Below are positions 1 to 39,264 of a stretch of DNA of 64,000 nt, piece by piece. This stretch comes from Prasinococcaceae sp. CCMP 1430. Taxonomy: Eukaryota > Plantae > Prasinodermophyta. A program made the translations under genes and the position numbers. The DNA lies in contig RQSC01000029.1 of assembly GCA_013416795.1 (NCBI GenBank), positions 353,248-417,247 of the forward strand, read 5' to 3'. How positions within the stretch are numbered: the first letter of the stretch is position 1; each line of letters starts with the position of its first letter. The notes under the pieces were generated by a model. It searched no databases. It was not told the DNA's origin and saw only the letters and a program-made list of their open reading frames with translations.

Positions 1-176
1 TCATGCAGCGCGGCGACGACACTGCCGAGGCGCTCAAGTCGCGCCTTGAGGCCTACCACGCGCAGACGGTGCCCATTCTCGCGCACTACGAGCCCACGGG
101 CGTGGTGTCCAAGGTGGATGCGAACAGGCCGCAGGATGACGTGTGGGCCTCCATCGAGAAGGTCATCTCGGCGTGA
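1..176 (+). CDS. ADK: Adenylate kinase, C-terminal fragment (5' part outside window)
   Basis: Frame from nt 3 reads [29 protein letters not shown]...SIEKVISA*. This matches the post-LID QRxDD-x-E-x-RLxxYHxQTxP motif. Confidence 0.88.
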
Positions 177-2359: not shown

Positions 2360-3350
2360 ATGGTGGCGGCGGCGCGAGGTGCGCGGCTGAGCGGGCATGC
2401 GCGGCGGCGCGCGCGCGCGGGCGTGGCTGCGTCGGCGCGCGCACAGCGGGCGTCCGTGCAGGCTGCGTCGGCGCGCGCACAGCGCGCGTCCGCGCCGTGG
2501 CCCGCCGCAGTGGCGGCAGCGGCGGCAGTCGCACTCTCTGCCGCCGCGCCAGGCGCCGCACTTGCGAGAGACCTGGAAGAGGTGGGGCCAGACCTCAACA
2601 AGCCTGACAGATGTAGCGTGGAGAGGCTCTCTGATTTCAGAGACTTCAGGGAGAACTACTCTCTCGAGGTGGCGGGCGGCAGCGCGCCAGAGGTACGCGC
2701 GTGCGCGCGCGCGACCCCCCGCGCACGCGATACCTCCTTCGCTGTACGCTGACGACAGGTTCTGCGCGCCCAACGCGCCCGCGGCGCACGCAGGCCGAGG
2801 TTGACGTGCGCGGATGCGACTTCAGCGGCCTCGACCTGCACGGCGCGACGCTCAGCGCAATCAACGCTGCTGGAGCGAGCTTCGAGGGGTCCGACCTGTC
2901 GGATGCCATCCTCACGCGCGCCTACCTCCGTCGGGCGAACCTGAAAGGGGCCAACTTGACTAGCGCCACGCTGTACGAGGTGCGTTGAGTCTGCGATGAC
3001 GCGTGCGTCGCTCGCGCGCATGCACTGGGTAGCTGTGAGCCGTGCGCGGGGTGCTGACCCAACATGGCTGTGGCCTCCACGCGTATGCGCGGGCGCGCGC
3101 GAATGCATGCCGCGGGGCGCCACAGACGCAGCTGCAGGGCGCCGACGTCCGCGATGCCTCCTTCGAGAATGCGCTCATGAGCGGCGTGTTCTTCGGGAAG
3201 GACGAAGGGCAGGTTGATGCGCACTCCAACGAGTTCGCGCAGATGGAGGGCGCGAACCTTGACGCCATCTTCTCGCGTAGCGACGTGCGCGAGCTCTGCA
3301 CCAACCCTACGCTCGACGACATGCAAAAGGGTTTTTACCTGGGATGCTAG
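2360..3350 (+). CDS. Plastid (thylakoid-lumen-type) pentapeptide repeat protein, 3 exons
   Basis: Arg/Ala-rich transit peptide plus hydrophobic AxA signal. Repeats CDFSG/LDLHG/ATLSA, ASFEG/SDLSD/AILTR, ANLKG/ANLTS. Introns begin at about 2693 (GTACGC) and 2980 (GTGCGT). Ends ELCTNPTLDDMQKGFYLGC*. Confidence 0.85.
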
Positions 3351-3518: not shown

Positions 3519-5040
3519 TCACTCACGCGCCGCGCGCCCGCGCCGCGGGAGAGGGGGGTACCACGCGCGCTTGGCGAACTCTTTCTGCTCGGGCTTGAGG
3601 GTCTTGTACTTGGAAAAGTCCCTGTCGTGCGTGTAAGAGAGGCACTGAGGGTCAGGCTCCTCGGTCTCCCCGGGGATGCTCAGCTCGCGGTAGGGCGTGC
3701 TCTTGCGCCACAGGTGGTTATGGTTCCAGACAATCAAATTGATGCGCTCGCCAGAGGTGATGTCGTCCGCACCGTGGCGATGCCTGCCCAAGTGCACCAG
3801 GCATCGGCCCTTTTTGTGGCGGTACACGTGCCGCAACTTGCGCAAGCGGTTGCCGCCACCCTCATCGGTGTCTTCCCCCATGACGCCGCAGAGAGACAGC
3901 CCGGCGCCCTCGAAGTTCTTTCCCAGGCAGGTGTTGAAAGTGACGTCGGAGTCGTCGGTGTGCATGTCCAGACCCAGGTCCGCCCCCAGCTCGTAGTGCA
4001 CCAGGAAGGAGTGGTGCGCGTCGAAGCGACAGCCCTCGGTGGGAAAGAGCATGGCGGCCAGCGGCTGAAGCGCGCGGCGCTGGAGCGCGTCGAGCGTGCC
4101 CTCGAGGCCGATCTCGTTGAGAATCAGTCCGTAGGCATTCATGCTGTTGGGCCTGCGCACCGGCAGCCCGCTGGCCTGATAGTGCTCCGCCTCCTCGACG
4201 AGCTTGTCGCAGAAGCTCTCCTTGAGGAAGGCGAACGAGTACGCGCCCTCACACTCCTTGGTGAGCAGGCGCGCGAGGCGCGCGCGCCTCTCCTCGGGCG
4301 CGAGCCCCTCGTCGAGCACCGCATTCGCGAAGTCCTCGTCGAACCACTCGTGCGGCAGGCCGCTCGCGTCGGCGCCAAAGAGGCACGCGTGCTTGCGCAG
4401 CGGCGCGTAGCGGGCGATGAGCGCATGGCGCTCCGCATCCTGCCGTGCAACCGCAGCCCACTGCGCGCAGACCTCGGCGTACTGCTCCTCAGGCATGATT
4501 CCCTCGGGCCACCTGAGCGGCCGCGACAGCAGCTCGTGCGCCGCGCGAAGGCAGCCGAGGACGTCGTACTCCCCACGCTCGTTGGGTGGGTAATTCTCCT
4601 CGCGGTAGAACACCGGCATCGGCTCGCCGTCATCGGCGAGCAGCAGGTGTCGCATCACGCCGCGCGCAGCGACGCGCGGCGGTCGCGTGGGAAAGTCGGC
4701 TGGCACCGTGAGCGTGAAGCGCACGCCGCGGTCGTACGGCCCGCCCGCCGCGCCGCGCACTGTCGCGTCCACCTCCCACGGCCCTTGCGTGGCGCCGTCG
4801 GCATTGGGCGCAACGACGACGGCGCGCCGCTCTCCGCCACCTTCCTCGCCATCACCTGCATCCTCCTCCCCGCCATCGTCTGCTGCCTCCTCGAAGAGGA
4901 AGTGCGCGAGCGCACGCGGCTCCGCGGAGAGGCACTCGACGTACGCGGGCAGCTCGGCCGCGCGCGCGCCACCCGGGCTCAGGGCGGCGAGCTCCTCGCG
5001 CAGCGCCGCGAGCGCTGCGGCGGGGGTCGGCCACCGCCAT
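3519..5040 (-). CDS. 2OG-Fe(II) dioxygenase (OGFOD2/ICU11-CP family) with N-terminal E2/UBC-like domain; apparent 1-nt frameshift after codon 6
   Basis: Metal-binding motif LDMHTDDSDVTFNTCLG, then HLGRHRHGA..ITSGERINLIVW. The N-terminal part reads WEVDATVRG..GGPYDRGVRFTLTVPADFPTRPPRV. ATG at 5040 joins the frame if one C of the run near 5022-5026 is removed. Confidence 0.85.
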
Positions 5041-5148
5041 CCGCCGTACCGCGGGCGCCGCCGCTGCCGCTGCGCGACACCCTCTAGGGGCGAGCACCCG
5101 CAAGAGTCGCGCGAGCATGCACCCGCACCGCGGCGCGCGTGCGTGCGC

Positions 5149-5558
5149 GCGCTGTGCCGCGGCGCGCCCGCGAGCGAGCGACTGTGTGCGAGCGCCCCGC
5201 CTGGCCTCCCTCAGCCACCACCGCCTGGAGGCCGTGCTGGCGCCCGCCCCCCTTCGCTGCCGGCGCCCGTGCGCCACTGTGGCAGTGGCATTGGCGTGGC
5301 GTCACGAAAATTTTGACGCCTGCGAATATGATTTTTTTTTTTTACTGTCGATGTGCTGGCGGCCTCCAGGCGGTGGTGGCTGAGGGAGGCCAGGCGGAGC
5401 GCTCGCACACAGTCGCTCGCTCGCGGGCGCGCCGCGGCACAGCGCCCGCCCTCTTTCGCTGCCGGCGCCCGTGCGCCACTGTGGCAGTGGCATTGGCGTG
5501 GCGTCACGCCAATTTTGACGCCTGCGAATATGATTTTTTTTTTATACTGTCGATGTGC
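5149..5558. repeat. Complex A-B-A'(inverted)-B duplication
   Basis: 5149-5234 is the near-perfect reverse complement of 5360-5445. 5240-5356 is directly repeated at about 5442-5558 with few differences. Confidence 0.92.
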
Positions 5559-5596
5559 AGCGTTGTGCCTTGCACGTTGCCACTGCGTGTGCACGT

Positions 5597-5730
5597 CGAC
5601 GGAAGAGTGTGCCAGTGTATGAATGTGTATCATGTCATTGTGCGTGTGATATGCGTGTGTGCTCTTCGACGGAAGTATCTGCCAATGTATGAGTGTGTAC
5701 GTCAGGATGGGTGTGATATGCGTGTGCATG
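5597..5730. repeat. Diverged ~70 bp tandem duplication
   Basis: CGACGGAAGAGTGTGCCAGTGTATGAATGTGTA...GTGTGATATGCGTGTG is followed by CGACGGAAGTATCTGCCAATGTATGAGTGTGTA...GTGTGATATGCGTGTG. Confidence 0.7.
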
Positions 5731-5752
5731 TGAGCTGGCATGTGCATGCATG

Positions 5753-6534
5753 TCATGCCACATCACGGGGTGCCAGTGTGTATGTGCCTTCGGGCGAATG
5801 CCCAGTGCGCGAAGACTGCCGCTTCTTGTGAAAGAGCCAGGTAGCACCCTTGGCTTTGCGCAAGATCTCCACAGGCCTGAGCTTGTGCAGCGCTTCGTAG
5901 GGCATCTCGACGACCTCGTAATTGCCCCTCTCCTCGGCTAGAAGGACGCCGACCGCAACTTGAAGGCATGAAGTCAGGGTGCGTGGGGCGGATCCCTCAC
6001 ATCTATGCCAGCATCGAGCAAAAGTCGCACGCAATCGGTATTGCCCATCGAAGTTGCCTCAGAAAGTAGAGATTGCACCACGTGATCAGAAGGTTTGACA
6101 TTGGCGCCCGCCGTCAGCAGGAGCTGGAGACAGTCGACGCGTCCACAGATTGCAGCCACCACCGAGACACGCCCGAGCGCGTCCTTATCAAACCCGACGA
6201 CGTTAGTCATCGTTAGCCCGTCATCATAGATAGTAGAGCTGATCTGAATCGCGCACTTGAGAACCTCTGTCTGCCCCTGGTCTGCTGCATATATGACGAG
6301 CGTCCAAAAATCACGAGTGTCCTTTGACAGCAACCACTCGACCAGCCAACCAACGGCGCTATTCGTGGCGGACCGCGCCGCGTCGCGCTCCTCCCGCGCC
6401 GCGCGCACATCCGCAGCATTGGTGCCCAGCGTCTGCGCAACGAGAAGGAGCGCCTGCCGCGCGCTCTCCGCCCTCGCCGCGCCGTTCGCGCCAGTGCCGT
6501 CCATGTCGCTGTCGTATTTCTCTGCGACGCACAA
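5753..6534 (-). pseudogene. Ankyrin-repeat gene, frameshifted or degenerate at the 3' end
   Basis: Ankyrin-like units AADQGQTEVLKCAI, AAICGRVDCLQLLLTAGANV and ATSMGNTDCVRLLLDAGIDV. A further unit (AEERGNYEVVEM) continues in another frame after the stop at 5974. Confidence 0.6.
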
Positions 6535-7590
6535 AAAATCGCTGCTGTTGGCCCAGTATTTGGTGCCGACTGCCGAGGCCAGGGCCGCGCTCCCGCGAAG
6601 GCTCGCCCGGGTCTCCTTGGCGCGGCCGAGGCGGAACTGTCGCTGCCGCCTGGTGTCTGCTTCCGCGCGAGGGCGGGGGCGGCGGCGGGCCCAGGGCGCG
6701 CGCGCGCGCGTGCAGTGGCACCACTCGCATGCCCTCTCTCAACCAGCGCGAAGCGATTAAATTTGCCCGTTTACGATCTGACGAAATGCGTAATTATGCA
6801 GTTTTATATGACAATGAATGTATTCAAAACATGCAGAAAGCAATTGGGAAGGCGTCGTCGCCGAGCGAACCTCGCTTCCGCCAGACACGTGGAGCGACGG
6901 AGAAGTTCGGGAGAACGGGAAAACACGCCATCGATAGCGCTTTTCAATTTTGAATGCATTCTGATGTGTCAATTACTCTCCCGTGGGTGATCTGCGGCCG
7001 GGCGCGCGCGCGCGCGGCCGCTGCCACAGCGCGCGCGGCGCGAGAGGTGCGTCCCCCCCCGCCCCCCTTCCTCCCCTCCAGGGGCGCATCGCGGGGCGAT
7101 CGCGCGGGCCGATCGCTCGGGCGATCGGTTGCTGCGGCCGCTGGGGGCGCGCGCTGACACCGCGCGGTCAGCCGCCGCCCGCGAGCGCGCGGAGGCGCGC
7201 GGCGGCCGCCACCTCGGACAGCTCCACACGCAGCGCAGCGTACGGTACACGTACTGTAAGGGTTACAGAAAGGTCCAATGAATAGGGTTATTCTCTGGAC
7301 CCTGTTTTTAGTTCATGGCGCCTGCGTGCCTGCGGGGCGCGCCGCGCGCGGTTTTTTTTTCCGGTCTTGCCGCTTTTCGCGGCGATTGCCGCGGCGCGCG
7401 CCCCGAATTTCATTGTGGATGTAACCCGCGCGCCAGCAAGCCCGGCGGCGGAAAATGCGCTGAAACACCAGATCTGAAACACCAGATCTCTTATCCGCGC
7501 GTGCAGCGAGGGGTGCGGCGGCGAGGGCGAGGGCGCATGTGAGAGCGGCCACAGTTGCGCCACAAGCCGCGCGGGGCGAGGGCGCGGGCG

Positions 7591-10500
7591 ATGGCGCCTT
7601 CGCCCGATGGCGGCGCCGCCGACAAGCCCGAGGTGTTCCCCGCGTGGTGTGAGGACGCCGAAGACGTCCTCGACTTCCACGGCGTCGATGACGTCGGAAA
7701 GGGGCTGAGCTCTTCACAGGTGCGCTCGCGGCGGTGCTCGCGCGCTCAGCCGGCGCAGGGGTACGCGTGTATGCGGCATGGGGCGCACTTCGCGGCCCCC
7801 GCATTCTGCACGCCTCTACCGCGGAGTCCTGTGGCGCGGATCTGATCGCAGCCGGCGCGCTTCGAGGCTGACATGGCCGCGGCTGACCCGCGCGCACCCA
7901 CGCGCGTGCAATCTGGTAACAGGTGGCTGAGCAGCGCGCCAAGTACGGTGCGAATGAGCTCGAGCACGAAGAGGCCTCGTCGTTGTGGGAGCTCGTCCTC
8001 GAGCAGTTCGACGACATCTTGGTGAAGATCCTGCTGGCGGCGGCCGCCGTGAGCTTTGGCCTCGCGTACGTCGACGATGCGGCCGCCGAGGAGGGTTGGA
8101 CGGCATACGTCGAGCCGCTGGTCATCCTCCTCATCCTCATCCTGAATGCGATCGTGGGGGTGTGGCAGGAGAGCAACGCAGAGAGTGCTCTCGAGGCTCT
8201 CAAGGAGATGCAGAGCGAGCACGCGTCGGTCGTCCGCGACGGTCAGCGCAACGGCCATCTGCCGGCGAGCGAGCTCGTTCCTGGCGATATTATCGAGCTG
8301 CGCGTGGGCGACAAGGTGCCGGCAGACTGCCGCGTGCTCGAGCTCAAGACCGCGACGCTACGGGCGGAGCAGGCGAGCCTCACGGGAGAGTCCGTGGCCG
8401 TGCTCAAGCAGACCGAGCCGGCCGGCGCGGAGGACTGCGAGATTCAGGCCAAGGACTCGATGCTCTTCGCTGGCACCGCCGTTGCCAACGGCGCATGCGT
8501 CGCCGTGGTGAACTCGATCGGTATGGCCACGGAGATCGGAAAGATCCAGGCGTCCATCCAGGAGGCCAAGGAGGAGGAGGAGGACACCCCCCTCAAGAAG
8601 AAGCTCGACGAATTCGGCGAGCTGCTCACGCAGGTGATCGGCATCATCTGCCTCATCGTTTGGATCATCAACTACGAGCACTTCCTCCAGATGGAGTTTG
8701 ACGACTGCTGCTGGATGCCGACGAAAGTCTCTTTCGACTTTGGCAAGTGCACCTACTACTTCAAGATCGCTGTGGCTCTGGCGGTGGCTGCCATTCCTGA
8801 GGGCCTTCCCGCGGTCATTACGACCTGCCTCGCGCTCGGCACGCGCAAGATGGCCCAGCAAAACGCCATCGTGCGAAAGCTGCCGTCCGTGGAGACGCTC
8901 GGCTGCACGACGACCATCTGCTCCGACAAGACCGGCACACTAACCACCAATCAGATGAGCGTGGTGCGCATGGTGGCCCTCGGCAAGTCCGGCACTTCTG
9001 ACATGCGCGCGTACGAGGTCACGGGCGCAACCTACAACCCGCTCGAAGGCGATGTGGTCGGGCTGCCCGCCAAGATGGACCCGGCGCTCACCGCCATTTC
9101 TACGGTCGCCTCGGTGTGCAACGACTCGCGCATCCAGTTGGACGCAAGCAAGCAGGTGTACCATGCCATCGGCATGCCCACTGAGGCGGCGCTGTGCGTG
9201 CTGGTTGAAAAGATGGGACTGCCAGATGCCGCTGAAAACAAGGCGGTCATCGACGGCGCCAATGGATGCGAACCCGTCAACGCCGCCTGGCGCGAAAAGT
9301 TTAGGCGCCTGGCGACCCTCGAGTTCGATCGCAACCGCAAGTCGATGTCTGTGCTCGCCGCGATGGGCGGTGGCAGCAGCAACGGCACCGTGCCGCCGTC
9401 CCCGGGACGTCGCTCGGGTCGCCTCGCGGCCAAGACCGACGCCGCGGGCGCTGTGACCACGCTCCTCGTGAAAGGCGCGCCGGAAAACGTGCTCGAACGC
9501 TGCTCGCAAATGATGCGCGCCGATGGCTCTGTGGTGCCGCTCGCGGCCGCCGACAAGGAGGCGCTGCTCGAGACCGTTGAGGACATGGCGTCCGACGCGC
9601 TGCGCACGCTCTGCCTCGCCATGAAGACGGGCTCCGCGCTTGGAAAGCTCGACGGATACACGGGCGCAGAGCACTCGGCGCACGGCATGCTCGCCGATCC
9701 CGAAGGGTACGAGGCCATCGAGAGCGGGCTCACGTTTGTGGGTCTCGTGGGCCTTCGCGACCCGCCACGCCCGGAGGTACGCGACTCGATGGTCGCGTGC
9801 AAAGCCGCCGGCATCCGTGTGATCGTCATCACCGGCGACAACAAGAAGACCGCCGAGTCGATCTGCCGTGACATCGGCGTCTTCAGCGCCGACGAGGACC
9901 TCTCTGGCAAGTCCGTGACCGGACGTGAGTTCGCCGCGATGCCCGAAGCGGACCAGATCGCCATGCTATCGGGCGGCGGCGGTCGGGTGTTCTCTCGCGC
10001 CGAGCCCCGCCACAAGCAGGACATCGTGCGCCTGCTCAAGGGCCAAGGGGAGGTCGTGGCCATGACTGGCGACGGCGTCAATGATGCTCCCGCCCTCAAG
10101 CTCGCCGACATCGGCATCGCCATGGGCATCGCGGGCACTGAGGTCGCCAAGGAAGCGTCGGATATGGTGCTTGCGGACGACAATTTCCAGACGATCGTGG
10201 CGGCCGTGGGCGAGGGGCGTTCCATCTACGCCAACATGCAGGCCTTCATCCGTTACATGATCTCGAGCAACATCGGCGAGGTTTTCTCCATTTTCTTCAC
10301 GGCTGCGCTCGGCATGCCCGAGGGCCTCATTCCTGTGCAGCTGCTCTGGGTCAACCTCGTGACCGACGGCCCCCCAGCCACTGCGCTGGGCTTCAACCCG
10401 GCGGACATCGACACGATGCGTCGCCCGCCGCGCTCTGCGAGCGACTCGCTGATCACGCCCTGGGTGTTCCTGCGCTACATGGTAGTGGGCACCTACGTGG

Positions 10501-21753: not shown

Positions 21754-24072
21754 ATGCCGCCGACGGCGGCTTGGGGAGCAGCACGCTCATCGCGCCGGGG
21801 GGGAGGTGTTGGCGCTGGCCGGGCCGAGGAGCGATGGGCGGCCGCGCGCGCGGCCGGGGCGGCCGTCAGCGGCGATGATATCGCAGCGGCGCTGGCGGAC
21901 GCGGCGGACGCGGCATGCGCGGGGTTCGGAATGCCCAGGGTGGCGCTGTGTCTGGCGGGGGGCGCGCGCACGCTGCCCCGCGCGCTGGTGCGCTCCACTC
22001 TGCAGCAGCACGTCGCGGGCGCGTTCGGTGGCGACGTCACGACCTTCGCGTACATCAAGCTCGCCGACGCGCGCGGCGACGCGCGGACGCAGTATGGCGC
22101 GACGGTCGCGTGCAGCGAGGCCGACGCGCGCGAGGCGCTTGCGCCGCTAGCACCCAGCGAGCTGCGATTGGAGCGCACTGACGCCCCCGAGCCGCTGCCA
22201 CGCTGTGAAGGCTACACTCAGTATACCGCAGTGCTGGGGGGGCTCTCCGAGCAGGACGCGTATACGCACAGCCGACAGCAGCACAATGCGTCAACACCCG
22301 CGCACTTCCTCACTCCCGCGTACCAGCAGTCGTTCCTCGGTCAGCTCAGAGGCAACTCGCTGTGCATGCGCATGGTGAAGGCGCACGAGGCGGCCCGCAA
22401 CATCACATTCGATTGGGTGATAAAGGCCCGCCCTGACCTTGCGGTTGTGCGACCGCTCAAAGCGCACTGCCTCTGGGATCCCACGCGCGTGCATCATCGC
22501 AACGATTACATTTACATCTCGCCCCGGCACCTCGCAGATCCTCTCCTCGAGGAGCCGTTCGTCGCGCACTACAGCTGCAATGCCGACTACGACGCGTCGG
22601 CGGGCAGGCCCGGCAAGCCGGGCGTGCTGGCGCTCGAGCAGTGGCTCTTCCGGCGAGTGGCTGCAAACGGCATCAGCATGAAGGAGGCTGGTCAGATCCT
22701 CGCGGCGGCACCACTCAGGCCTACGGGGCCTGGCTACCCAGACGTGCTTTGCAACTTTATCAACAGAGGCTCGTACGGAGGGGCCATCTCACTCTTCGTC
22801 AACGACGACGGGAACAGTGTACCTCACCGCCCCGACCTGATAGGGGGCGACGTGGGCGCCACGACCGCCGCCAGTGCGAACACGACGAGTGATTTCTGCA
22901 GGGCAGTTTTGAACAACAATCCATCGAACGCGCTTCCGCCAGCGGGCGCGGACGCGCCGTCAGCGCCAGACGCGGTCTGCCGCTCTTTCGGCCGCCCGAA
23001 GGTTGCCGTCTGCCTCGCGGGTGGCGCTCGCACCCTTCCGACCCGCCTGCTGACATCAACAATTCGCGGGCATGTGCTCGCGGCCTTTGGCGGCGACGCG
23101 CACCTGTTCGCGTACCTCAAGCTGCAAGATCGGCGTGGCGATGATCGAGAAGGCGTGAACGGACTCGTGCATGCCGCTGAGGAGCCCGTACGCTTGGCGT
23201 TGAGAGACCTCGGGGACATCGCACGCGTGGCTTCGGACGACATCGTACTCGAGATGGGCGACGTCGCAGCGGGCGTCCCAAACTGCTCCAACTACACGTC
23301 CTATGGCCCAGAGGCTGTCGCCGCCGCTGTCGCACGGAACAACGCCCACACCAGCGCTGACAGACACGCCGCGCCCCCTGAAGGAGTCGGGGGTAGACTG
23401 AAATCGGCTGCGTACCTGGACAGCTTCCTCGGGCAGCTCGAAAACAATCGCGCGTGCATGCAGCTCATCGAGGCGCACGAACGCAAGAACGCCATGCGAT
23501 TCGACTGGGTGGTGAAACTCAGGCCGGACTTCGTCGCCACGCAGCCCCTCAAGCCGCATTGCTTCTGGGACCCCACGCGAGTCCACACGAAAAATGATTG
23601 GCTCTACTTGGCCCCACGTGCACTGGCTCCCAAGCTACTGAGCGAGCCCTACCGCCTCTACCACAGCTGCCATCGCGACTACGACTCTACTCGCGGCAAG
23701 GACGGGCCGATGGAACATTGGCTCATGGAAACGCTCGACGCGCTGGAGGTGCCTCGACGCGAGGCCGGGCGCGAGGTGCCTGGCGCCCCTGTACGTCCCG
23801 TCGGGCCTGGCCACCCAGATCTGTTGTGCCAAAACATCGAGCGCGCGAGCTTCGGCGGTGCCATCGAGCTCACAGATGGAGCTCGGGCAGGGACTGAGCC
23901 TCATCGACCTGACCTCCTGGACGCGTCGCGTACCAGCGTGCTGTCAGCTCGGGATGGAGGGGACCAGCGGGTGGGCGAGGGAGTGGGTGGGCTGTGCCGC
24001 GCACTCACCAACCACAATCCCGCAAATGCACCGCAGCGCCGCCGAGCGTATGCCAAACCATCGCCGCGCTGA
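21754..24072 (+). CDS. Protein with two tandem copies of a putative glycosyltransferase-like domain; 5' end uncertain
   Basis: Both halves read P[RK]VA[LV]CLAGGARTLP...AFGGD...FAY[IL]KL.D.RGD...SFLGQL..N..CM....AHE......FDWV[IV]K.RPD...PLK.HC.WDP.RVH..ND... Confidence 0.8.
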   Translation: MPPTAAWGAARSSRRGGGVGAGRAEERWAAARAAGAAVSGDDIAAALADAADAACAGFGMPRVALCLAGGARTLPRALVRSTLQQHVAGAFGGDVTTFAYIKLADARGDARTQYGATVACSEADAREALAPLAPSELRLERTDAPEPLPRCEGYTQYTAVLGGLSEQDAYTHSRQQHNASTPAHFLTPAYQQSFLGQLRGNSLCMRMVKAHEAARNITFDWVIKARPDLAVVRPLKAHCLWDPTRVHHRNDYIYISPRHLADPLLEEPFVAHYSCNADYDASAGRPGKPGVLALEQWLFRRVAANGISMKEAGQILAAAPLRPTGPGYPDVLCNFINRGSYGGAISLFVNDDGNSVPHRPDLIGGDVGATTAASANTTSDFCRAVLNNNPSNALPPAGADAPSAPDAVCRSFGRPKVAVCLAGGARTLPTRLLTSTIRGHVLAAFGGDAHLFAYLKLQDRRGDDREGVNGLVHAAEEPVRLALRDLGDIARVASDDIVLEMGDVAAGVPNCSNYTSYGPEAVAAAVARNNAHTSADRHAAPPEGVGGRLKSAAYLDSFLGQLENNRACMQLIEAHERKNAMRFDWVVKLRPDFVATQPLKPHCFWDPTRVHTKNDWLYLAPRALAPKLLSEPYRLYHSCHRDYDSTRGKDGPMEHWLMETLDALEVPRREAGREVPGAPVRPVGPGHPDLLCQNIERASFGGAIELTDGARAGTEPHRPDLLDASRTSVLSARDGGDQRVGEGVGGLCRALTNHNPANAPQRRRAYAKPSPR

Positions 24073-24140
24073 CGAGCACGCACGAGATATGTAATTTTTG
24101 TAACATTATTATGCGCAAGTACCAGCGTCGCAATGCCGCA

Positions 24141-26555
24141 TTAGTCAGTGGGAGCACCATCGCCATTGCGCGCGCCGCCGTCTTCACTGTCCGCCTGGCC
24201 CGCATTACCACTGTCCAGATTGTCGCCGGAGCTCTGATTGTCGACTGCGACACTATCAACGGAGGAGCTCGGGCCTTCGCCTGCGACACTGTCGATGGAG
24301 CTCGAATCCTCAACGGCGAGAGAGTCGCGGGGGGTTGCACCCTCGACGTCGGCAGGCACAGCAGCTGCAACTTCTTCAGGAGGGCGCTCACGCAAGGCCG
24401 CGAAAGCCTTGCCGACGACAGCCGAGAGCGAATCCGATAGCGGCTTCTTCAGCAGCTCCATCACCTTGACGGGCTGCCACTCAAATTCGAAGCTCGTCTT
24501 GGAGGGTCCAGTAGAAGGAGTGAGCGCAATTGGAGGTGCTTCGGTGGCGGAGCTGTCGGAGATTGCTTTGCGCCGTCGACGTTCAAGAGTCCTCGAAACG
24601 CCGACTGTCGTCACCACGAACAATCCGAGCATCCTCACCACCTTGCCCCACACAGGCGATTTTGGCAGAACTAGCTGCCCACGGGCGTACAGCAACGCCT
24701 TGTCCTTGCCGCGTCGCCATCGTTCGCGTGCGCGTGAGCGCCGCGCGGCGCCCTCGCCGTGCTTGCTGGGTGCGAGCGAGGCCGCCTTGCGCAGCGCCTT
24801 AGCCACGAGCGTCTCCTTCGCCTCGAGCTTCGCGCGTCGTGCCTCTTTCCGCTCCTCAGACTTCTGCTTCTTCATGAGGCGTTTGCCTTCCCGCCGCCAC
24901 CACTTGGACCCTGCAGGGTTCGCGAGCTTCTCCTCCAGCGCGCGCAGCTCTGTGGACACGCGCAGTAGCCGCAGCCGAAATGCGTGTAGCTCGCGGCTCT
25001 GTGACCGTGAAAGGCGGCGCACGTCCGAGAGTTGCAGCCGCACCAAACGTCGCACTTCCGCTTCGAGCGGGAGGATGTAGAGCCCCCACAAGCTGGGCTG
25101 CTGCTGCCCCTTATTATGTTCGTGCTGCTGCTGCCCTGCCGCTCGTTGCACCTGCTCTGCCCCGCCGAGGACCCCGTGCGGGGCGTGCCCACCTGTGGCG
25201 CCCTCGGCGAAGTGAGCTTGGGCACTGCTGTGGCGTTCTCCACCGCCGCCGGCCAGCGCTTCTCCGAACGGGGTCGATTGCGTGGACAGGCTCGTCCCGT
25301 GTGCGTCCGTGCCAGCCCTCGGCACGGGCACGTGCCCGCCCCCTCCTCCATTAGCAGTGGAGAATGCGTCGCGCTCCCTGTACGCATACTCGGCGAAGGT
25401 CACGAAGCGCGGGCCTGCTGCATGGGCGTCTTGGCCGCTTGCGCGGTGGTCGAGACCTGCGACGGTCGACTGCATCACCTCACCGATTGCGCGCTGCTCT
25501 GCCATGATTACGCGCATTGGATAGCGCTGGACTGGCCACGCAGCAGCAGCGTCCGTCACCGCCGCGGCCGGCGCAACAGATTCCGCGGGAACAGGCAGCG
25601 GGGGCTCGCCCGCATCGGCGACGAAGATCCTGTCTATTTGCCCGGCGGCCAAGCTCGCCGAAGAAGGATTTCTCATGTAGCCAATCTGGCGCGGGAGCGC
25701 TTGCCGCGGCATGCGGACCGCCTTATGCTGCAGGTTCTTGGCTTCCCAGCGCCGCAGGAAGAGGCCGCTCGCCGCTTCCTCGACCACGCCGTCGATGACC
25801 TCGTCGATAATGCCCGCAATGACGCCGCTGCCGCTATCCTTGGGACCGTCCTGCGCGCCCTCGTCATCGCTCTCGTTGATCCGACCAGTCGTGGTGGTGG
25901 GAAGGGTGTGTCTCCGCGCTCGCCAGGCGTTCTTCCCGGGCGTGCCAACGGGGGTCGACCCATTGGTCGCGAGGCCATGCGGAGCGAAACCGGGGGTGCC
26001 GGACGCGCGGCCAGCCCTCTCGCGCTCGGCTCGCGCGCGCGCCAGGGCGTAGAGCGCTGCTGTGGCGAATCGATCCTCAGGAGAGTAAGCCTCGAGCTCG
26101 CGGCCCTTGCGGATGAAGGCCGCGCGGATGCGTTTGAGGCCGGCCTCCATGGAGAACTGGAACGTGTCCTCCACGCGAATGTCCTCACACTTCGTCGCGT
26201 CGCGGAACTCTTGCATCCAGTAAAACAGACAGCACAGGTGAAAGCTCAACTCCAGCACAAAAATCTCCTCCTTGTCGCTGCGGTCGGCACGAAACGACTG
26301 CGGGTCGCACAGCATGGGCTCGACGAGGCGCAGCAGCTCGTTGAGGGTGTCTCGCAGCGGGCCGGTGGTGCGCAGGCGAGCCTCGGTGAGCCTACCCTGC
26401 CTCGCGCGCCTCTCGCGCGCTCGCTCGCGCCCCTTCTCGGCGAAGCTACCGTGTGCGACGCGCACGATTCCCCCGGCGGACAGCGCGAGCACCAGCCCCG
26501 TCGCCGTGCCGTAGGCGGTCTTCTTGAGGTTGTCGAAGACGTTCACCGAGCTCAT
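24141..26555 (-). CDS. Hypothetical membrane-anchored protein (~800 aa)
   Basis: Long ORF with two hydrophobic segments (GLVLALSAGGIV, MLGLFVVTTVGV), a coiled-coil/basic region and an acidic C-terminal repeat. No family recognised. Confidence 0.65.
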   Translation of the reverse strand: MSSVNVFDNLKKTAYGTATGLVLALSAGGIVRVAHGSFAEKGRERARERRARQGRLTEARLRTTGPLRDTLNELLRLVEPMLCDPQSFRADRSDKEEIFVLELSFHLCCLFYWMQEFRDATKCEDIRVEDTFQFSMEAGLKRIRAAFIRKGRELEAYSPEDRFATAALYALARARAERERAGRASGTPGFAPHGLATNGSTPVGTPGKNAWRARRHTLPTTTTGRINESDDEGAQDGPKDSGSGVIAGIIDEVIDGVVEEAASGLFLRRWEAKNLQHKAVRMPRQALPRQIGYMRNPSSASLAAGQIDRIFVADAGEPPLPVPAESVAPAAAVTDAAAAWPVQRYPMRVIMAEQRAIGEVMQSTVAGLDHRASGQDAHAAGPRFVTFAEYAYRERDAFSTANGGGGGHVPVPRAGTDAHGTSLSTQSTPFGEALAGGGGERHSSAQAHFAEGATGGHAPHGVLGGAEQVQRAAGQQQHEHNKGQQQPSLWGLYILPLEAEVRRLVRLQLSDVRRLSRSQSRELHAFRLRLLRVSTELRALEEKLANPAGSKWWRREGKRLMKKQKSEERKEARRAKLEAKETLVAKALRKAASLAPSKHGEGAARRSRARERWRRGKDKALLYARGQLVLPKSPVWGKVVRMLGLFVVTTVGVSRTLERRRRKAISDSSATEAPPIALTPSTGPSKTSFEFEWQPVKVMELLKKPLSDSLSAVVGKAFAALRERPPEEVAAAVPADVEGATPRDSLAVEDSSSIDSVAGEGPSSSVDSVAVDNQSSGDNLDSGNAGQADSEDGGARNGDGAPTD

Positions 26556-26713
26556 GACGCGCTCCTTCACGCCCTGAAGCGGTTTTGGCAGCGCCGCGAG
26601 GCGCGCGCCCAAGCCGCGCGCCTTGCCTTCGCCCTCGCCCTCGCCGCCCTCGCCCCCCCGCCTCCCCCTCGCACTGTGGATTGCATCGCGCGCCGCGCCG
26701 CGTTTACGAGCAG

Positions 26714-27167
26714 GCGGGCTACGCGGGCGGCCTCTCCGAGACCAGCGCGACTCCGAGCGCGGCCGCGCACGCGGCTGCCGAGTTCGCCATGGGCGAGATC
26801 GCCAAGGCTTCCAACTCGCTCGTAAAGCCCACCCTCGCCGCGGACGAGGGGAACGGTGGAGTGGTCAGTTGCAAGACGCAGATCGTCGCTGGCACGATGT
26901 ACCACTGCACAATCAAGACCAGTGAGGTCCGTCCCGCTGGCATCGCGCGAAGTCCAGCTCGACGCGTTGCGCGCCGCGCGCGCGCGCTTCGACCGCGAGC
27001 TTTCCGAGCTGCCTCCCACATCAATGTGCATGGTCAGCGCTGACAGGACAGGCCGTCCATCTCCACGCGCGCTCGGACAGGCTGACTACTACGACGTCAA
27101 GGTGTGGGCCAAACTCGATGGCACCTACGAGCTCACCAACTACGCGCAGAAGGCCGCCGGCCAGTAG
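26714..27167 (+). CDS. Cystatin (cysteine protease inhibitor), at least 2 exons; start not located
   Basis: N-terminal AGG, AAEFAM helix, QIVAG (QxVxG) and a later exon YYDVKVWAKL. Intron donor GTCCGT at about 26927, acceptor GACAG at about 27080. Confidence 0.8.
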
Positions 27168-27356
27168 GTGCGCCAGGTGCCGCGCACGGCCGGGGAGTGG
27201 ACGGCGCGCGCAGGCGTGAGCGCGAGCGCGCAGCTCTCGTGAGGACGGACCATTGTATAGAAGCACAAGTAAAGTACACAGTGACATAGTACAGGACGCG
27301 AGCGCCCCCGCTCCTCCCAGCGCTCGGCGTCGCGGCTCAGCAACCGTGGCCGCGGC

Positions 27357-28500
27357 TCACGGGCCGTGCTCTTCTTCCGCGAGCGCGGCGAGCGAGATGA
27401 CGAGCATGCCGAACATCATCGCGGCAAACTTGCCGACGCGCATGCCGCGGCTGTCATGGCCGTGCACGTGCGTGCCCGCCACCCTGCGAGTCTCGAGCTC
27501 GTCGCCGACCACCTCGGCCATGCCCACGTAAAGGAAGGTGCCCGCCGCCAGGCAGTTGAGCACCATGTTCGCCCACGAGTCGCCCGATCCGACGATCGCG
27601 CCCACGAGGATGCCCATGGGCGTCATCAGCGCGAACACGCAGATCAGAATTGCGAGCTGCCTCATGGACGCGCCGTCGCGCAGCACGCGCGTGCCGACGG
27701 CGATGGCGGCCGCGCTCTTGTGGGCGCAGATCGCGACGAGCATCGAGCGCACGCCCGCAAGATCCTCAGCCAGGCCCAGCGCGACGCCCGCGAGCACCGA
27801 GTGGATCGAGATGGCCAGCAGCAGCAGCATCGACCCGCGCATCTGCCCCCATCCGACGCCTTCCCGCGCTGCGACGACCTCAGCGACGCCCGAGTCTTTG
27901 TGCTCGTCCACCTCGTCCAAGTGATCGTGCGCGTCGCTGTGCGAATGAAAGTGTCCCGCAAAGGCGGTGCGGAGCTCGACCTCCTCCGCGGGCGACGCGC
28001 CTGGCTGCCCCCCGTGGTCGCAGTCCTGCGAGGTCGCATGGCCGTGCGTGTGGAACATCACCCTCTCCACGAAGAGCACCAGGTAGAATCCGAGTCCCAC
28101 GATGGCGTACGGCAACGGGAAATTGCCGTAGTCGAGTCCCTCCGCGCCCTCGAGCGCCTCCGGGAGAAGATGCAGAAGGCACGTCGCCACGAACACGCCG
28201 CCGGAGAAGCAATTCATGACCGACATGTAGGCGTCATAGCGAGCGAACGAGCTGCGCAACACCGCCGGAACGCAACCACCCAGCAACCCGAGCACGAAGA
28301 TGATAAACACCGACGCGTACTTCAGGCCGGTGCCGTCGGCATGCTCCTCGTCGCCATCACCGTACGGCGCCGCTCTCGCGGCGGCGCCCTCGTCGGCCAC
28401 GCCCTCACTGACGAGCACCGCTCGCCGCGCCACGAGGGCGAGGACCTCTCGCCCGCGCCGCGCCTCTTGCTGCCCGTCGAGGACGGCGACGCGAGGCTCG
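27357..28500 (-). CDS. ZIP-family Zn/Fe transporter; no in-frame ATG before TM1
   Basis: Motifs LKYASVFIIFVLGLLGG, NCFSGGVFVATCLLHLLPEA, His-rich loop, SIHSVLAGVALG, AICAHKSAAAIAVG and LAAGTFLYVG. Confidence 0.93.
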
Positions 28501-28761
28501 CCGTTCGCGCCGCGCCCCGGCGCCGCCCGGACGCGCTCTCGCTCAGCCCCCCTCGGCGAGCTTCGCGCACGGAAATTAGACTCTCCCGTGGGTATATATA
28601 TTGAACGAATAAAATCATTAAAATCGCGGATGCAGATGCAGATGCGATCCGCCGCCGCCTGCGTGGCGATCGGCGTGGCGCGCACGCACGTGAGGCCGCC
28701 GGGCTCGTGAGGGCGACCCCCGCCTCACGCGGCGCTGCGTTGCAGCGCTGCGGCTCGCTTG

Positions 28762-30466
28762 CTACCGGCTGGCGCCGCCGCCGAGGGACACGAAGGCGCC
28801 CATGCGCTCCACCATGACCGGAGGCCACCGGCGGATCCGCGTCAGCCAGTCCGGGTCCCTGTACGCTGCGCAACCGTCGAAGACGGGGCCGTCGGGCCCG
28901 TAGAGCTGCCCGGTGTTAATCCGGGTGCATGCCCATTCCCACACCTCCTCTGCGCGCTCCAGCTCCCCTTGGTCGTAGTACATCGCCGCGAGTGCCGCAC
29001 GCATGTCGACGCTGCCGGGCGCTTTCCTCGCAACGCCCTCCATTCGGCGCAACGCATCGTCCCTGCCCAGCTGCGCGGCGACGAGCGCAGCGTTCGAGTC
29101 GGCATAGATCAGCCCGGCGACGTTGCGCGCGGCCTGGAAGAGCCGGCTGCTCTCGTCGAAGTCCGCGAGTGCCTCGTCGTACTGCGCGAGCGCCACGCGG
29201 CAGTTGCCGCGGGCGTTGTAGAGATACGGCGGTGCCGCCCCCGTCGCCTCGGACGCTTCGATTGCTCGCGAGTAGTTCGCCACAGCGTCCTCCCACTGCG
29301 CGAGGCCCTCGTGAGCCAGGGCCTTGTTGCCAATCAGGCCGATCGATACGTACTCGGGCGGGTACAGGTCCTCGGCCCTCCTGAAGTCGCGCAGGGCATC
29401 GTCGAAGCGCTTGAGGTCCACGAGGCACTGTCCGCGCCTCTCGTACCAGACGGCGTCGTCAGGTGAAGTCATGATGGCCTCATCGAGGGCGGCGAGCGCC
29501 TCTGGCAGCTGGCGCGACGCGTAAGCCTCCTTCGCACGCGCGGCAAGCGCCTCCAGCTGGACATCGTCAGCGGCCTTGACCTCCGCCCACAGCGGTGCGC
29601 CAGCCTGCGCACCCGCGCCACCGTCGGCCGCGGCCCGCCCCGCACCGCCGAGCGCGGCAGCCCCAACGCTGACGAGGCCCAGCAGCGCACCGCGCCGCGC
29701 CGTCAGCGCCTCCGCCCCCGCTGCACGATCGTTCCTACAGCCGTCATTCCCCCGGCCACCCACCCGCGCCCGCGTCGCCGCGCTCAACCCCGAAGTGGTG
29801 TTCACCGGCTTCCAGCAGCGCATCGACGCGCGCAATGCCGATGCGCTGATCGCCGAGTTCGCGCCCGACGTGATCCTCGACGGCTGCGACAATTTCGCCA
29901 CCCGGCTGGCGGTCGCAGACGCCGCGCTGCGTCATTGTATCCCGCTCGTCTCCGCCGCCGTCTCCGAATTCGAGGGACAGCTGGGCGTGTTCCGCGGCTG
30001 GGAGCCGGACAAGCCCTGCTACCGCTGCTTCGTCGGCCATGATCCCGAGCGCCCGGGCATCAGCTGCGCCGAACAGGGCGTGCTGGGCGCGCTTACTGGG
30101 GTGATGGGCAGCCTCGCCGCGCTGGAAGTGGTCCGCGCCATCGTGCCGCTCGGCGAGGAGACCGCGGGTAAGCTGCTGCTGGTTGACGCGCTGGCCTTCC
30201 GCTTCCGCACGCTGACGCTGCCGAAGGACCCGGGCTGTCCCGCTTGTGGTGATCTGGAGAGGCCGGAGTGATCGGTCCGCTCCCCGAGGTGACGTTCTAC
30301 GGATTGGCGACAGCCTATTTCGTCCTGTGCACGATCACCCCTGGCCGCGCCGACCTCACCGGCGCGGGTCGGCGCCCCCCTCGCCCTCGCCCGCGCCGTG
30401 CGGGCAGCCCGCCGCGTCCTCGCGCGCACACGCGGCGCACGCACCCGCTTGCCGGGCGGCACGCAT
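28762..30466 (-). CDS. Thylakoid-lumen-type TPR protein of cyanobacterial origin; predicted intron about 29721-30359
   Basis: Twin-arginine signal ARRGALLGLVSVGAAALGGAGRAAA, several TPRs, and conserved tail DMRAALAA..W.C...Y.DPDWL..IRRWPP. Donor G|GTGAG at 30359; acceptors TGCAG (29721) or TGTAG (29735). Confidence 0.82.
29768..30271 (+). pseudogene. moeB: Bacterial MoeB/ThiF adenylyltransferase, C-terminal half only
   Basis: Motifs ALNPEV, DGCDNFATR, PLVSAAV..FEGQL, PCYRC, SCAEQGVLG and PKDPGCPAC. The N-terminal GxGGxG and SNLxRQ motifs are absent. No introns. Confidence 0.9.
30268..30343 (+). pseudogene. 5' fragment of a second bacterial gene coupled to moeB (LysE/RhtB-like N-terminus?)
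   Basis: The GTG start overlaps the moeB stop (GTGA). It reads MIGPLPEVTFYGLATAYFVLCTITPG; the hydrophobic helix ending in TPG resembles LysE translocators. Confidence 0.5.
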
Positions 30467-30956
30467 GAAACGTCGCATGAACACACACGCGCATACTTTG
30501 GACCCAATTTTCACCATCAGCATGCCGGTCGGTGGCTCTTCTGAGGCCGCCAGCCAGCGGAGCGGCGTCGCGCGCGGCGCCGGCGCCTCGGATCCGATTC
30601 GGGGGTTTGCGCGAACCCTAGCGACGCGAGCGAGGCTCTAGAGCTAGACGAGCGAGCGAGCGAGCGATGGAGCGAGGGGTTTATTTTATTTTTATTTTGT
30701 AGTGGACAGTGTACCATACCAGGTACTGTATCTCTTTCTTTGAAGTGGGTTCCATACGAGCTTCGACCGACGGTCGATGGTGGGATCCACACGGGGAATG
30801 CGCTGGGTCAAACCTCCGTTTCGCGGCGCTCGTCGCGGGCGGAGCCTGATTTTGATGGGAGGGGGAGCGGGCCGGCGTCGCGCCCGGCATGCTGCCTGCC
30901 TGTGCCGGGCGTGGTCGCTCGCTGGCTGAGCCGCTTCGGGTCGGCCCACGGATGCC

Positions 30957-31868
30957 ATGCGGGTGGCGCGCGTGGCGCGCGGTGACGCGCTTCTCGCCGA
31001 CTGCGGGGAGGAAGCTCTCGCGGACGTCGACGCCGTGCTCGTGTGCGTCGGCGCAGGCCGGCGTGAGATGCAGGCCGCGTGGCCCGCGCTGAGCGCCTCG
31101 GGGCGGCTGCGCTGGGTGCACAGCACCTTCGCCGGGCTCGACCACTTCCTATTCCCCGAGCTGGCCGCTGCGCCGGGCGTGGCCTTCACAAACGCGCGCG
31201 GCGTCTTCTCGCACTCGCTCGCCGAGTTCGTCATTTTCGCGTGCAAGTACTTTGCGCTCGACTTCCCGCGCGCGATGGCGGCGCAGGGGCGGCGCGAGTG
31301 GGCCCCCTATACAGTTGAGGAGCTGCGCGGGCAAACCTTAGGAGTTGTGGGAATGGGAAGTATCGGAGCCCAGACTGCGCGCCTGGCGTCGGCCTTCGGC
31401 ATGCGCGTGGTGGGGCTGAGGCGCAGCGGCGCCCCCGCCGAGGGCGTGGCGCGCATGTACGGCGCGGACGAGCTGCCAGCGCTCATGGCGGAGAGCGACT
31501 ACGTGGTCGCGTGCCTGCCGTACACCGACGCCACCGACGGTTACATAGATGCCAAGGCCATCAGCGCGATGCGATCAAACGCAGTCTTCGTCAATGTCGG
31601 CAGGGGCAAGACTGTGGACGAGGCCGCGCTGGTGGAGGCGCTCAGGGAGAAACGCATCAGGGGCGCGGCGCTCGACGTTGTCCGCGAGGAGCCGATGCCT
31701 TCCAACAACGAGTTGTGGGAGCTCCCGAACGTCATCATCACGCCACACTGCGCCGACAGCACAGCCGTCATGGCAAAGGAATCGATCGAGCTTTTCGTGG
31801 AGAACGCCGGAAGATTCGTCGAGGGCCGTGAGCTACTCAACACAGTCGACCCTGCAGCTGGGTACTGA
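30957..31868 (+). CDS. D-isomer-specific 2-hydroxyacid dehydrogenase
   Basis: Motifs WVHSTFAGLD, TNARGVFSHSLAEF, LGVVGMGSIG (Rossmann), FVNVGRG, ALDV...EP and ITPHCAD. Confidence 0.93.
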   Translation: MRVARVARGDALLADCGEEALADVDAVLVCVGAGRREMQAAWPALSASGRLRWVHSTFAGLDHFLFPELAAAPGVAFTNARGVFSHSLAEFVIFACKYFALDFPRAMAAQGRREWAPYTVEELRGQTLGVVGMGSIGAQTARLASAFGMRVVGLRRSGAPAEGVARMYGADELPALMAESDYVVACLPYTDATDGYIDAKAISAMRSNAVFVNVGRGKTVDEAALVEALREKRIRGAALDVVREEPMPSNNELWELPNVIITPHCADSTAVMAKESIELFVENAGRFVEGRELLNTVDPAAGY

Positions 31869-31908
31869 TGAAGCGGCGCGCGCGTGGCGCGACGAATGGC
31901 GCGTGTTC

Positions 31909-31913
31909 TGTAA
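31909..31913 (+). terminator. TGTAA polyadenylation signal (representative copy)
   Basis: Correctly oriented TGTAA shortly after stop codons: + strand 2165, 13538, 18103, 24090, 31909; - strand 36933, 40070, 46419, 46432, 58847. Confidence 0.75.
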
Positions 31914-32199
31914 GCAGTGACACGGCTGATTTTCATGAAAGTGTGACGGTGCATGCGGGCTCGCTTTGCTTGAGTGTACTACCTGTTCGCTTCTAACGCG
32001 TGCTGCAGCAGTGCACGCAGCAGTGTGCGCGATGTGCGCTGTCCCGTGTGCTGGTCGGTGCCCGATGTCCATGCTACGGCACGTCGACAAAATTGCAATG
32101 CGTGTCGGTGCGTGGCTGCAGTCACGCATGGTTGTTGTATCCTGTATGATTCTGGCTCCGCAAATTGCCAAGCAAGGCTGGTGTGAATGGCACTCCTCC

Positions 32200-34043
32200 T
32201 CACGTGCGCGGCCGCTTGACGGCGATCCATCCCTCGTCATCGCCGATGGGTCTCTCAACTACCGAGCGCTTCTGCAGCACCCTTCCGGTATCGTCGGGCG
32301 ATGTGTGCATCGCTTCGGCGCTCTCAGCTCGGACCATGCACGCTGCCGAGGCGTCAGCAGCGACATGTGTAGTCTGCGGCGTGGGAGCGCTGTCCCTCGG
32401 TCGGTCCTTCCCACCAGGGGCGCTCGGCAGCGGATGCATGCGTGATGGGGACGCATTGATGGTGGACGGGTGCACAGGCGCGAGCGGTGCTCTGCCTTTG
32501 CCATGTGCGCCCTGCAGGGCGATGTCGTAAGGATCCATGGCATCGTCGCCGTGGTCAGCGTTGGTTCGATGCGCTGGATTCTCCTGACCGTCTTCGTCAT
32601 CATCGAGCGTGAGCGTGAGGTCCCCCATGGCATCGATCTGATCCTGTGTGAGCGTGCACGTGTCTGCGAGGCAATCATTGATGCGGTATCGTGGGTCGCC
32701 GCCACGCTGCTCCCCATCGCCTGCGGCGCCGGCAGCGACCTCTGGATGCGCGTGCGTCTGCACCATCGCATGCTCGGCAGAGGCGGGAGGCTGCTCGATG
32801 TCAAGGGGCTCTTGTGTGGGGTCCTGGTCGTCCGCCGCATGCAGCGGGAGCGGCACCGGTGCCTCTGGCGCCTCAGCCGGAGCCGCGGCATCGGGTTGGT
32901 CGTGGCCGTCGGCGGGCGCGCCGCCCACACCGTCCACGTCGGGTTCCCCCGCACCGTCCTCATCCGCCTGCTCTGCCCCCGGCTGCTGCTTCTGGCTGCT
33001 CGCGCGCTGCTGCTTCTGACTGTTGTGGTACACCGCCACTGGATCGAGCACGGTGCGCACAGAGGCGCTCATGCCCACGTGACCGCCCGCATTCACGCCC
33101 GCGCCGATGGCCATGGTGAACACATCCTCATCCACGAACTCGGCAGCATCGCCCTCGCGCTCTGCGCGGAAGAAGGGCGGCTCGTAGTCGGCAGGCGTAG
33201 CGTCCGTGTACTCGAGCTTCATCGTGAGCACTCGGCCCTCCTCGACTTCTTCGAAAGTGGTCCTGAGTGAGCGAGATTCAAAAATTGGCAAGGCCAAGCC
33301 TGTCAGCGACGCAGCGCTGCGCGCGTACGTTGATGCACGGCCCACGTAGCTGGGAGAAAACTATGAGGCCAATGCGCATCATGATGCACAGAGATGCAGC
33401 GCAGGCAACGCATCGAGCTGAAAGAGCCTGCTAAGAACTCATGGTGCATCACGTACATCAGCTGCATCAGCTGCCTGGTCATGTACGCACACTGCATGCG
33501 CGTGGTCTTCACGTCGCCAGGCTCGGGGAGGCCGCCGCTCCGCGCGCCGATGCGTAACCCCTCCTTGTCACCGTCCTCTTCATCGCCCACGCCGTCGTCG
33601 TCGCCACCGACGAGATGGATCGTCGCGTCGTCTCCCTCACCGTAGGAGAACGAGAACGAAAACTGCTCGAGGATGGCGCGCGGATGGCCCTCCGCGACGC
33701 GCGCCCTCTCGACGTCATCCTTCGGCGCCAGCACGGAGAAGAGCAGGCGGCGCAGATACTTCCGCTGCAGCGCGTCGCCCACGCCGCTGTCGACCCACGC
33801 GACGAGCCGCGCCGCCTCCTCCGAGAAGTCCTTGTTCAGCTTCCAGACATCCAGGCCGAGGCCTTCGGCGCGCGTGCGCGTGAACGCTTCCTGCGGGAAC
33901 AGGGCCCGCCCGAAGGCGATGCTGTGCAGGCTCATCGACGTCAGGCCCTTGGCGACGCCCAGCGCGGCCGTCTGCGACACCGCCGCGGTCCTCGCCTTGG
34001 CCTTGCTCTTGGCCTTGCTGCGCGCGCGCGTCTGGCGCACCAT
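32200..34043 (-). CDS. HOP1: Meiotic HORMA-domain axis protein (HOP1/ASY1-like), 2 exons (intron 33263-33456)
   Basis: Motifs SLHSIAFGRALFPQEAF, WVDSGVGDALQRKYLRRL, EQFSFSFSY and LTMKLEYTDATPADYEPPFF. Long disordered tail ends in a closure-motif-like KRSVVERPI. Confidence 0.85.
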
Positions 34044-34621
34044 CGCCGTCGGCATGGCGCGCTACGAATTTCAGCGCAGGCCGTCCTCTGAGGCGGGACG
34101 ATCGCGCGGCCGCCCGAGAAAAAGCGCGCCCGCGCCAGCCGAGCGGCGCGCTGCGGCCGGCGCGCCCGCCCCTGCTCTGGCGCCCCCGCCCGCGCGCGCG
34201 CGCGCGCGCGGGCGGCGCTGCGCATGCGCGCATCGCCGAGGCCTCACGTAATACAAAACGATGATACTTCTAACCACGGGAGAAACATTTCCATACAACA
34301 CTTGCAATACTGTACATTCGCTCGCATTCAAACGAATGCATTCGAATTTCGAACCGAGCGAATAAATCATTGAAAACCATCGATTACTCGTAGGTGTGGA
34401 CGTGGACTGTGTACTCGCAGCAAAATTCGCTCGCGGTCTCACAAAAAGACGCTGACACGTGGATGAGATTTTTTTTTGCATCCTTTTGCAGCTGCAGGGC
34501 TCCTCGGACGATGTTTTGCGTGTGCGTAAAGTGAATGCGTTTTGATGGAGGGCCTGCGACGGGGGGCAACCAGCCTAACATAATACTTTCCACTAAATGC
34601 GTTTTTGTTCCAACGATTAAA

Positions 34622-39263: not shown

Positions 39264-39264
39264 N

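Follow-up and report, generated by a model that had tools for sequence, protein, structure and literature searches.

The window analysed here is a stretch of 64,000 nucleotides of the contig RQSC01000029.1 (assembly GCA_013416795.1), and its positions 26673-30957 (4285 bp) were found to consist of four unrelated pieces: one from a ZIP transporter locus, one from a TPR locus, one from Sphingomonas and 615 bp of host-like DNA. None of the five junctions (J1 to J5) contains an N, and the sequence runs through each of them without a break. The pieces, the junctions and the native blocks on either side were delimited as follows, with the matching contigs (L numbers), proteins (P numbers) and profiles in brackets.

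21807-26672, minus strand: W1, native host block with an 889-aa gene and its neighbour (L090, L096, L101)
26661-26672, minus strand: J1, junction of W1 and D, a G-rich 12-mer (GCGAGGGGGAGG) approximately common to both native partners
26673-28506, minus strand: D, piece of the ZIP transporter locus PRCOL_00003888 (P0194, P0196/L089, Pfam Zip)
28507-28527, minus strand: J2, junction of D and C, a 20-21-bp exact identity
28528-29762, minus strand: C, piece of the TPR locus PRCOL_00002246 (L087, L088, L102; P0121/P0198; Pfam TPR)
29763-29779, no strand assigned: J3, junction of C and B, a 17-21-bp exact identity
29763-30342, plus strand: B, Sphingomonas fragment (DNA and protein matches; 4 internal mismatches to the best matches)
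about 30343: J4, junction of B and A', with an overlap of at most 3 bp visible
30343-30957 (615 bp), no strand assigned: A', host-like unplaced DNA without a match to the native contigs or to the rest of the window
30957/30958: J5, junction of A' and W2
30958-34132, plus strand: W2, native host block with a dehydrogenase gene and then two HORMA-domain genes (L100; L090/L091/L092/L096/L097)

The true extent of the bacterial DNA is 29763-30342, of which 29763-29779 is common to the host sequence. As the preliminary description had stated, this DNA carries the C-terminal part of MoeB: positions 29768-30271 of the plus strand encode the C-terminal 167 aa of a MoeB/ThiF adenylyltransferase. The 167-aa part matched positions 82-238 of the 238-position Pfam ThiF profile (PF00899) with an E value of 5e-35, and the NCBIfam MoeB models matched it as well, all of them under their full-length cut-offs (e.g., 161 vs 449 bits). 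The homology of the part that is present is clear, and the complete ThiF domain, including its N-terminal nucleotide-binding part, is not there. Judged from its sequence, it is therefore a gene fragment of the PF00899 family and not a functional member. The stop codon TGA at 30269-30271 overlaps a GTG at 30268, so the reported GTGA coupling to a second gene is real, and both bacterial genes are indeed cut off. Of the second gene only the first 25 of 68 codons are present (30268-30342). Its designation as LysE-like proved wrong: Pfam and NCBIfam searches were blank on the fragment and gave nothing on the full Sphingomonas 68-aa protein, which is much shorter than a LysE protein and does not match the LysE/RhtB profile.

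The guess that the fragment is Sphingomonas-like was right. In the protein search the closest match was the 257-aa MoeB of Sphingomonas sp. NIBR02145 (P0001, 99% identical), followed by hundreds of further sphingomonad MoeB proteins at lower identity. At the DNA level, where near-identity to a sphingomonad had been proposed as the point to check, window positions 29760-30345 (586 bp) gave gapless alignments with the NIBR02145 chromosome and with five Logan contigs, the identity being 98.8-99.0%. The moeB locus of NIBR02145 (CP114791.1; L081 5263-5848) is 98.8% identical over the 586 bp and has the same GTGA arrangement, its two genes (5001-5774 and 5771-5977) sharing an identical 4-bp overlap. 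The MoeB part in the window differs from the NIBR02145 protein by one residue, and relative to that locus B holds only the C-terminal 167 of 257 moeB codons and 25 of the 68 codons of the next gene. Since B has neither a promoter nor the 5' half of moeB, it cannot be functional. When the end bases were set aside, four internal differences from the best matches remained, three of them at third codon positions and one a Phe to Leu change; three of the four are singletons, seen where all the sphingomonads compared agree. These differences would fit strain variation or low-coverage read errors, and no decay in the alga was seen.

Sphingomonas sp. NIBR02145 is a Korean soil isolate (PMC10353387). 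Thus, the closest sequenced relative of B comes from soil, whereas the alga is oceanic. Sphingomonas is also a listed, recurrent contaminant genus of reagents and laboratories (PMC4228153). A megablast comparison of the rest of the window with the sphingomonad loci gave no other match. In a hexamer log-likelihood scan (sphingomonad loci vs window) B ranked first, with a z of only 2.65, and the next peaks, at 9.8-10.2 kb and 25.5-26 kb, lay within host ORFs, those of a P-type ATPase and the 889-aa gene. As these peaks fall in long host ORFs and have no megablast match, a second bacterial piece was not seen in the window.

The TPR piece on one side of B starts at about codon 32, includes the stop codon (28762-28764) and extends through about 255 bp of 3' UTR. 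It lacks the native ATG, the first ~31 codons and the promoter, so that the window's copy of this gene is without its own start. Piece C was 97.6% identical to the environmental contig L087 (666-1933), 95.5% to L088 and 98.0% to L102. All three match the window only from 28507-28509 to 29779-29783, with sharp ends. In these contigs, and in the proteins P0121 and P0198, the native TPR gene is one uninterrupted 369-aa ORF across the site, and its ATG lies 92 bp upstream of the point at which the window switches to Sphingomonas sequence. The placement of the bacterial DNA inside a predicted intron was thus not borne out; no intron at this position was seen in the orthologous genes, which are continuous. 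The native downstream neighbour of TPR in the environmental contigs is a Methyltransf_16 gene and not ZIP, from which it follows that the TPR piece is out of place. The exon-1 peptide of PRCOL_00002246 was found upstream of TPR in L087 and L088.

Two further observations concern the native TPR gene. Residues 1-85 of P0121, its native N-terminus, consist of an Arg/Ala-rich leader and, after it, RR, a hydrophobic stretch and AAA. The whole resembles a bipartite transit peptide with a twin-arginine thylakoid-lumen signal, which would make the earlier label of a plastid TPR protein plausible. In addition, L087 contains TTTAGGG-like, plant-type telomere-like repeats a few hundred bp upstream of TPR (115-135 and 320-345), and L088 has none. 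Either TPR may natively have a subtelomeric position in some strains, or L087 may itself be chimeric.

Piece D retains the 3' flank and the coding sequence of the ZIP gene and lacks the native signal peptide of ~43 residues and the start codon. Positions 28475-27360 of the minus strand correspond to residues 13-384 of P0194 with 100% identity, and over 372 residues the ORF in the window has 100% identity with PRCOL_00003888 of Prasinoderma coloniale. This alga is the host. At its N-terminus the native ZIP protein (P0196, from the Tara contig L089) has about 43 more residues, which look like a signal peptide. The window tracks L089 only downstream of ~28527, and upstream of it tracks the TPR 3' UTR. 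The exon-1 peptide of PRCOL_00003888 lies upstream of ZIP in L089. The public model of this gene also omits the native ~43-residue signal peptide, by way of a dubious upstream mini-exon, and for this reason the reference gene model looks wrong too.

On the other side of B lies A', which contains an AT-rich promoter-like island and short ORFs, and holds an ATG at 30478 and a GGTGAG donor. No match to A' was found in the native contigs or in the rest of the window, nor in an exact-pattern scan of JGI metagenome contigs. Hence neither flank of B is native to this locus, and removal of the bacterial DNA does not make the host flanks contiguous, as B is flanked by the displaced TPR piece and by A'.

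The native arrangement was found in independent contigs. Block W1 is 98.4% identical to L090 (3835-8699), 98.6-99.6% to L096 and 99.06% to L101 (223-5087), and it is collinear with the environmental and near-identical-strain contigs up to 26672. Block W2 is 99.97% identical to L100 (404-3571) and 98.6-98.8% identical to L090, L091, L092, L096 and L097. The Tara scaffold L090 aligns in two blocks, 1-3175 corresponding to window 34132-30958 and 3835-8699 to window 26672-21807, and L096 aligns in two blocks in the same way. The native distance between 30958 and 26672 is therefore 659 bp (L090) or 654 bp (L096). In the Logan assembly of run SRR29950796, L100 has 1 mismatch in 3168 bp to window 30958-34125, parts from the window at precisely 30958 and then runs on through 403 bp of the native segment, and L101 departs exactly at 26672, also into the native segment. 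Thus, in none of these four assemblies (L090, L096, L100 and L101) were the junctions of a transferred block found; all are native and without the block. Since L101 is only 99.06% identical to W1, the source of SRR29950796 is, by this comparison, a closely related strain and not strictly the same clone as the source of the window. The two contigs of this run differ from the window unevenly in adjacent blocks (0.94% for L101, 0.03% for L100), which could reflect strain mosaicism by recombination or a mixed-source consensus.

What the window lacks is an extreme-GC native stretch of ~655 bp between 26672 and 30958, comprising a bidirectional promoter and the 5' ends of the 2-hydroxyacid dehydrogenase gene and the 889-aa gene. 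The missing native sequences (the 659-bp segment and the 5' ends of TPR and ZIP) have a GC content of 77-83%, with 100-bp peaks of 88-90%, and contain G/C runs of 7-9. The independent short-read assembly of Logan likewise breaks within the 659-bp segment. As a consequence, the dehydrogenase PRCOL_00002814 is without its first 35 codons in the window, the ORF there being 303 aa (30957-31868) vs 338 aa in P0225. The native segment encodes these 35 residues, which are present in PRCOL_00002814, a protein identical in sequence to a UniRef entry. The apparent ATG at 30957 is a product of junction J5, and since this start codon is an accident of the junction, any annotation of this assembly has a false N-terminus for the gene. 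A six-frame translation of the window contains neither the exon-1 peptide of PRCOL_00002246 nor that of PRCOL_00003888. These peptides and N-termini, missing here, are part of the published proteins, which implies that, for all three genes, the annotated reference includes the native DNA upstream. Three conserved genes, TPR, ZIP and the dehydrogenase, are thus without their start codons simultaneously. We did not find the chimeric ORFs (the 379-aa minus-strand ORF across J3 and the 303-aa dehydrogenase) in public assemblies, which is a weak negative as an exact match was required.

The two adjacent HORMA-domain genes (window 32203-34100, minus strand; L090 78-1933) adjoin the dehydrogenase gene, encode 250 and 343 aa in environmental contigs and show 98-99% conservation across many contigs of Tara and Logan. 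The one at 32203-33222 was found in many environmental contigs. Reference gene numbers were considered for synteny, with 10 window ORFs looked up and 2 present in the collection. The numbers 2246, 2814 and 3888 are far apart, and the numbering may not follow position.

The positions at which the window parts sharply from independent assemblies are 26672, 28507, 29779 and 30958, each of them in at least two independent contigs. Only breakpoints present in at least two contigs were counted, because environmental scaffolds too have artefacts at G-rich sites. The break of L089 against the window at 26638 was uninformative as sole evidence for J1, as the Tara scaffold enters poly-G and Ns there, and J1 is therefore based on L090, L096 and L101. 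The scaffold L089 also starts with 30 bases of poly-G (1-30) and has a poly-G/N/poly-C join at 2710-2765. Three of the junctions, J1, J2 and J3, lie in short exact repeats of k-mer size. At J1 there is a 9-bp exact identity together with a difference in the length of the G-run. At J2 the native TPR 3' UTR agrees with codons ~44-50 of native ZIP. At J3 Sphingomonas moeB agrees with the 5' coding sequence of native TPR, over 17, 19 or 21 bp according to the environmental variant.

Taken as a whole, the alignments demonstrate that D, C and B are misplaced and, besides the native arrangement and the junction identities, establish what each piece is with the exception of A'. We conclude that window positions 26673-30957 are very probably a gap-bridging assembly chimera that includes a contaminant contig, and not the product of gene transfer. 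The line of evidence that we regard as decisive is the native arrangement of the locus in independent contigs. As B sits inside a 4.3-kb patchwork that was not seen in other data for the same alga, it is almost certainly there through an assembly error. A chimera with a contaminant had been offered in the preliminary description as a fallback, and this fallback is consistent with all the evidence gathered.

Such a chimera could have formed as follows. The extreme-GC, G-run-rich stretch of ~655 bp would have been poorly covered and assembled by short reads, leaving a gap. Four small orphan contigs in a row (ZIP, TPR, Sphingomonas and the unplaced host piece), each bounded by similar hard-to-sequence sites, would then have bridged this gap. 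The Sphingomonas link would be a low-coverage contig of ~580 bp from contaminating reads, and chance identities about as long as a k-mer (12, 20-21 and 17-21 bp at three junctions) would have linked the contigs. If so, the bacterial DNA belonged to the read set and was no part of the algal chromosome. What we infer from this pattern is the precise step in the assembler and the role of Sphingomonas as a culture or reagent contaminant.

A second explanation, which we consider improbable, is that the 4.3 kb are a real, complex insertion private to this clone. A double-strand break in the GC-rich bidirectional promoter would have been repaired with the loss of ~655 bp, and four fillers, three from other host loci and one from associated Sphingomonas DNA, would have been captured or copied by microhomology-mediated template switching. 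The sequence is continuous across all the junctions, junction microhomology also marks template-switch repair, and the four differences from known Sphingomonas strains show a source other than a sequenced strain. We retain a small probability for it partly because the Logan run from which L101 comes is not from the window's very clone. However, identities of 17-21 bp are longer than usual for such repair and equal in size to small assembler k-mers, and all the pieces end where short reads assemble poorly. Moreover, the insertion would disable both the dehydrogenase and the 889-aa gene at the locus, the closely related strain, the annotated reference proteins and the UniRef protein are all native, and the nearest sequenced relative of B is a soil isolate. 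If it were true, the insertion would be a natural snapshot of bacterial DNA first entering an algal nuclear genome as repair filler.

The headline reading of the preliminary description was that an intron of the plastid TPR gene had recently received ~600 bp of bacterial DNA by horizontal transfer, and that the insert is tolerated since splicing removes it and the TPR protein is still produced, with a new N-terminus. The splice-like motifs on which it drew are present: a GGTGAG donor (exon end 30360), TGCAG at 29721 and TGTAG at 29735. The frame arithmetic was also correct, since the ATG at 30478, the donor at 30360 and the acceptor at 29735 give an open 363-aa frame that continues into the twin-arginine region, and the acceptor at 29721 is out of frame. 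This reading is nevertheless scarcely credible, as the native TPR gene is continuous here with an ATG of its own, the supposed exon 1 lies within A', a piece with no relation to the upstream region of the native TPR gene, the TPR piece has itself been misplaced, one open frame in three per acceptor is expected by chance, and the bacterial DNA is but one of four unrelated pieces where same-species data have ~655 bp instead. The removal of one C, proposed in order to repair the frame for the acceptor at 29721, was dismissed as ad hoc. The 9-bp inverted repeat reported near both ends does exist; it was rejected as a meaningful end structure, as it was chosen post hoc, such a repeat arises in 2.4% of simulated sequences, and one of its arms lies in the stretch shared with the host.

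The window has gaps of a single N at 39264, 53543 and 60471 and a gap of 166 Ns at 63604-63769. Single-N gaps are typical of short-read scaffolds, and those seen here, with the 166-N gap, point to a short-read, scaffolded and gap-closed assembly. The joins at the single Ns may conceal more misjoins of the same kind. Li et al. (2020) described a gapless PacBio/NextDenovo assembly of 22 chromosomes (PMC7455551), and since the window has N gaps it does not belong to that assembly.

As biology, the locus is of no weight, because gene transfer was not demonstrated. Its value is in quality control: this Prasinoderma coloniale assembly spans extreme-GC 5' regions of genes with misplaced host and contaminant DNA, and does so gaplessly. 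The effects at this locus are three truncated conserved genes, spurious starts and gene neighbours, and a spurious case of horizontal transfer. Claims of fusions, truncations, foreign fragments or synteny that are made from this assembly need to be checked against the PacBio reference, a transcriptome or environmental contigs.

A comparable situation is the disputed claim of horizontal gene transfer in a tardigrade, in which contaminant-derived chimeric contigs in a eukaryote draft genome were reportedly taken as transfers. The window resembles such cases of contaminant chimeras in having near-identical bacterial sequence within a host scaffold, from a common contaminant genus and absent from independent data for the same species. 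It differs from them in that B is tiny (~580 bp) and is chained to misplaced host pieces by identities of 12-21 bp, and is not a whole scaffold. The other known system is the capture of filler DNA at double-strand breaks, as in NUMT and NUPT insertions and in the multi-fragment junk DNA at the insertion sites of Chlamydomonas mutants. As in filler-DNA capture, several unrelated fragments lie head to tail at one site and the original sequence is lost. In contrast to it, the junctions in the window have far longer identities than the microhomology typical of end joining, GC peaks hostile to assembly mark the ends of the pieces, and the independent data present the empty native site.
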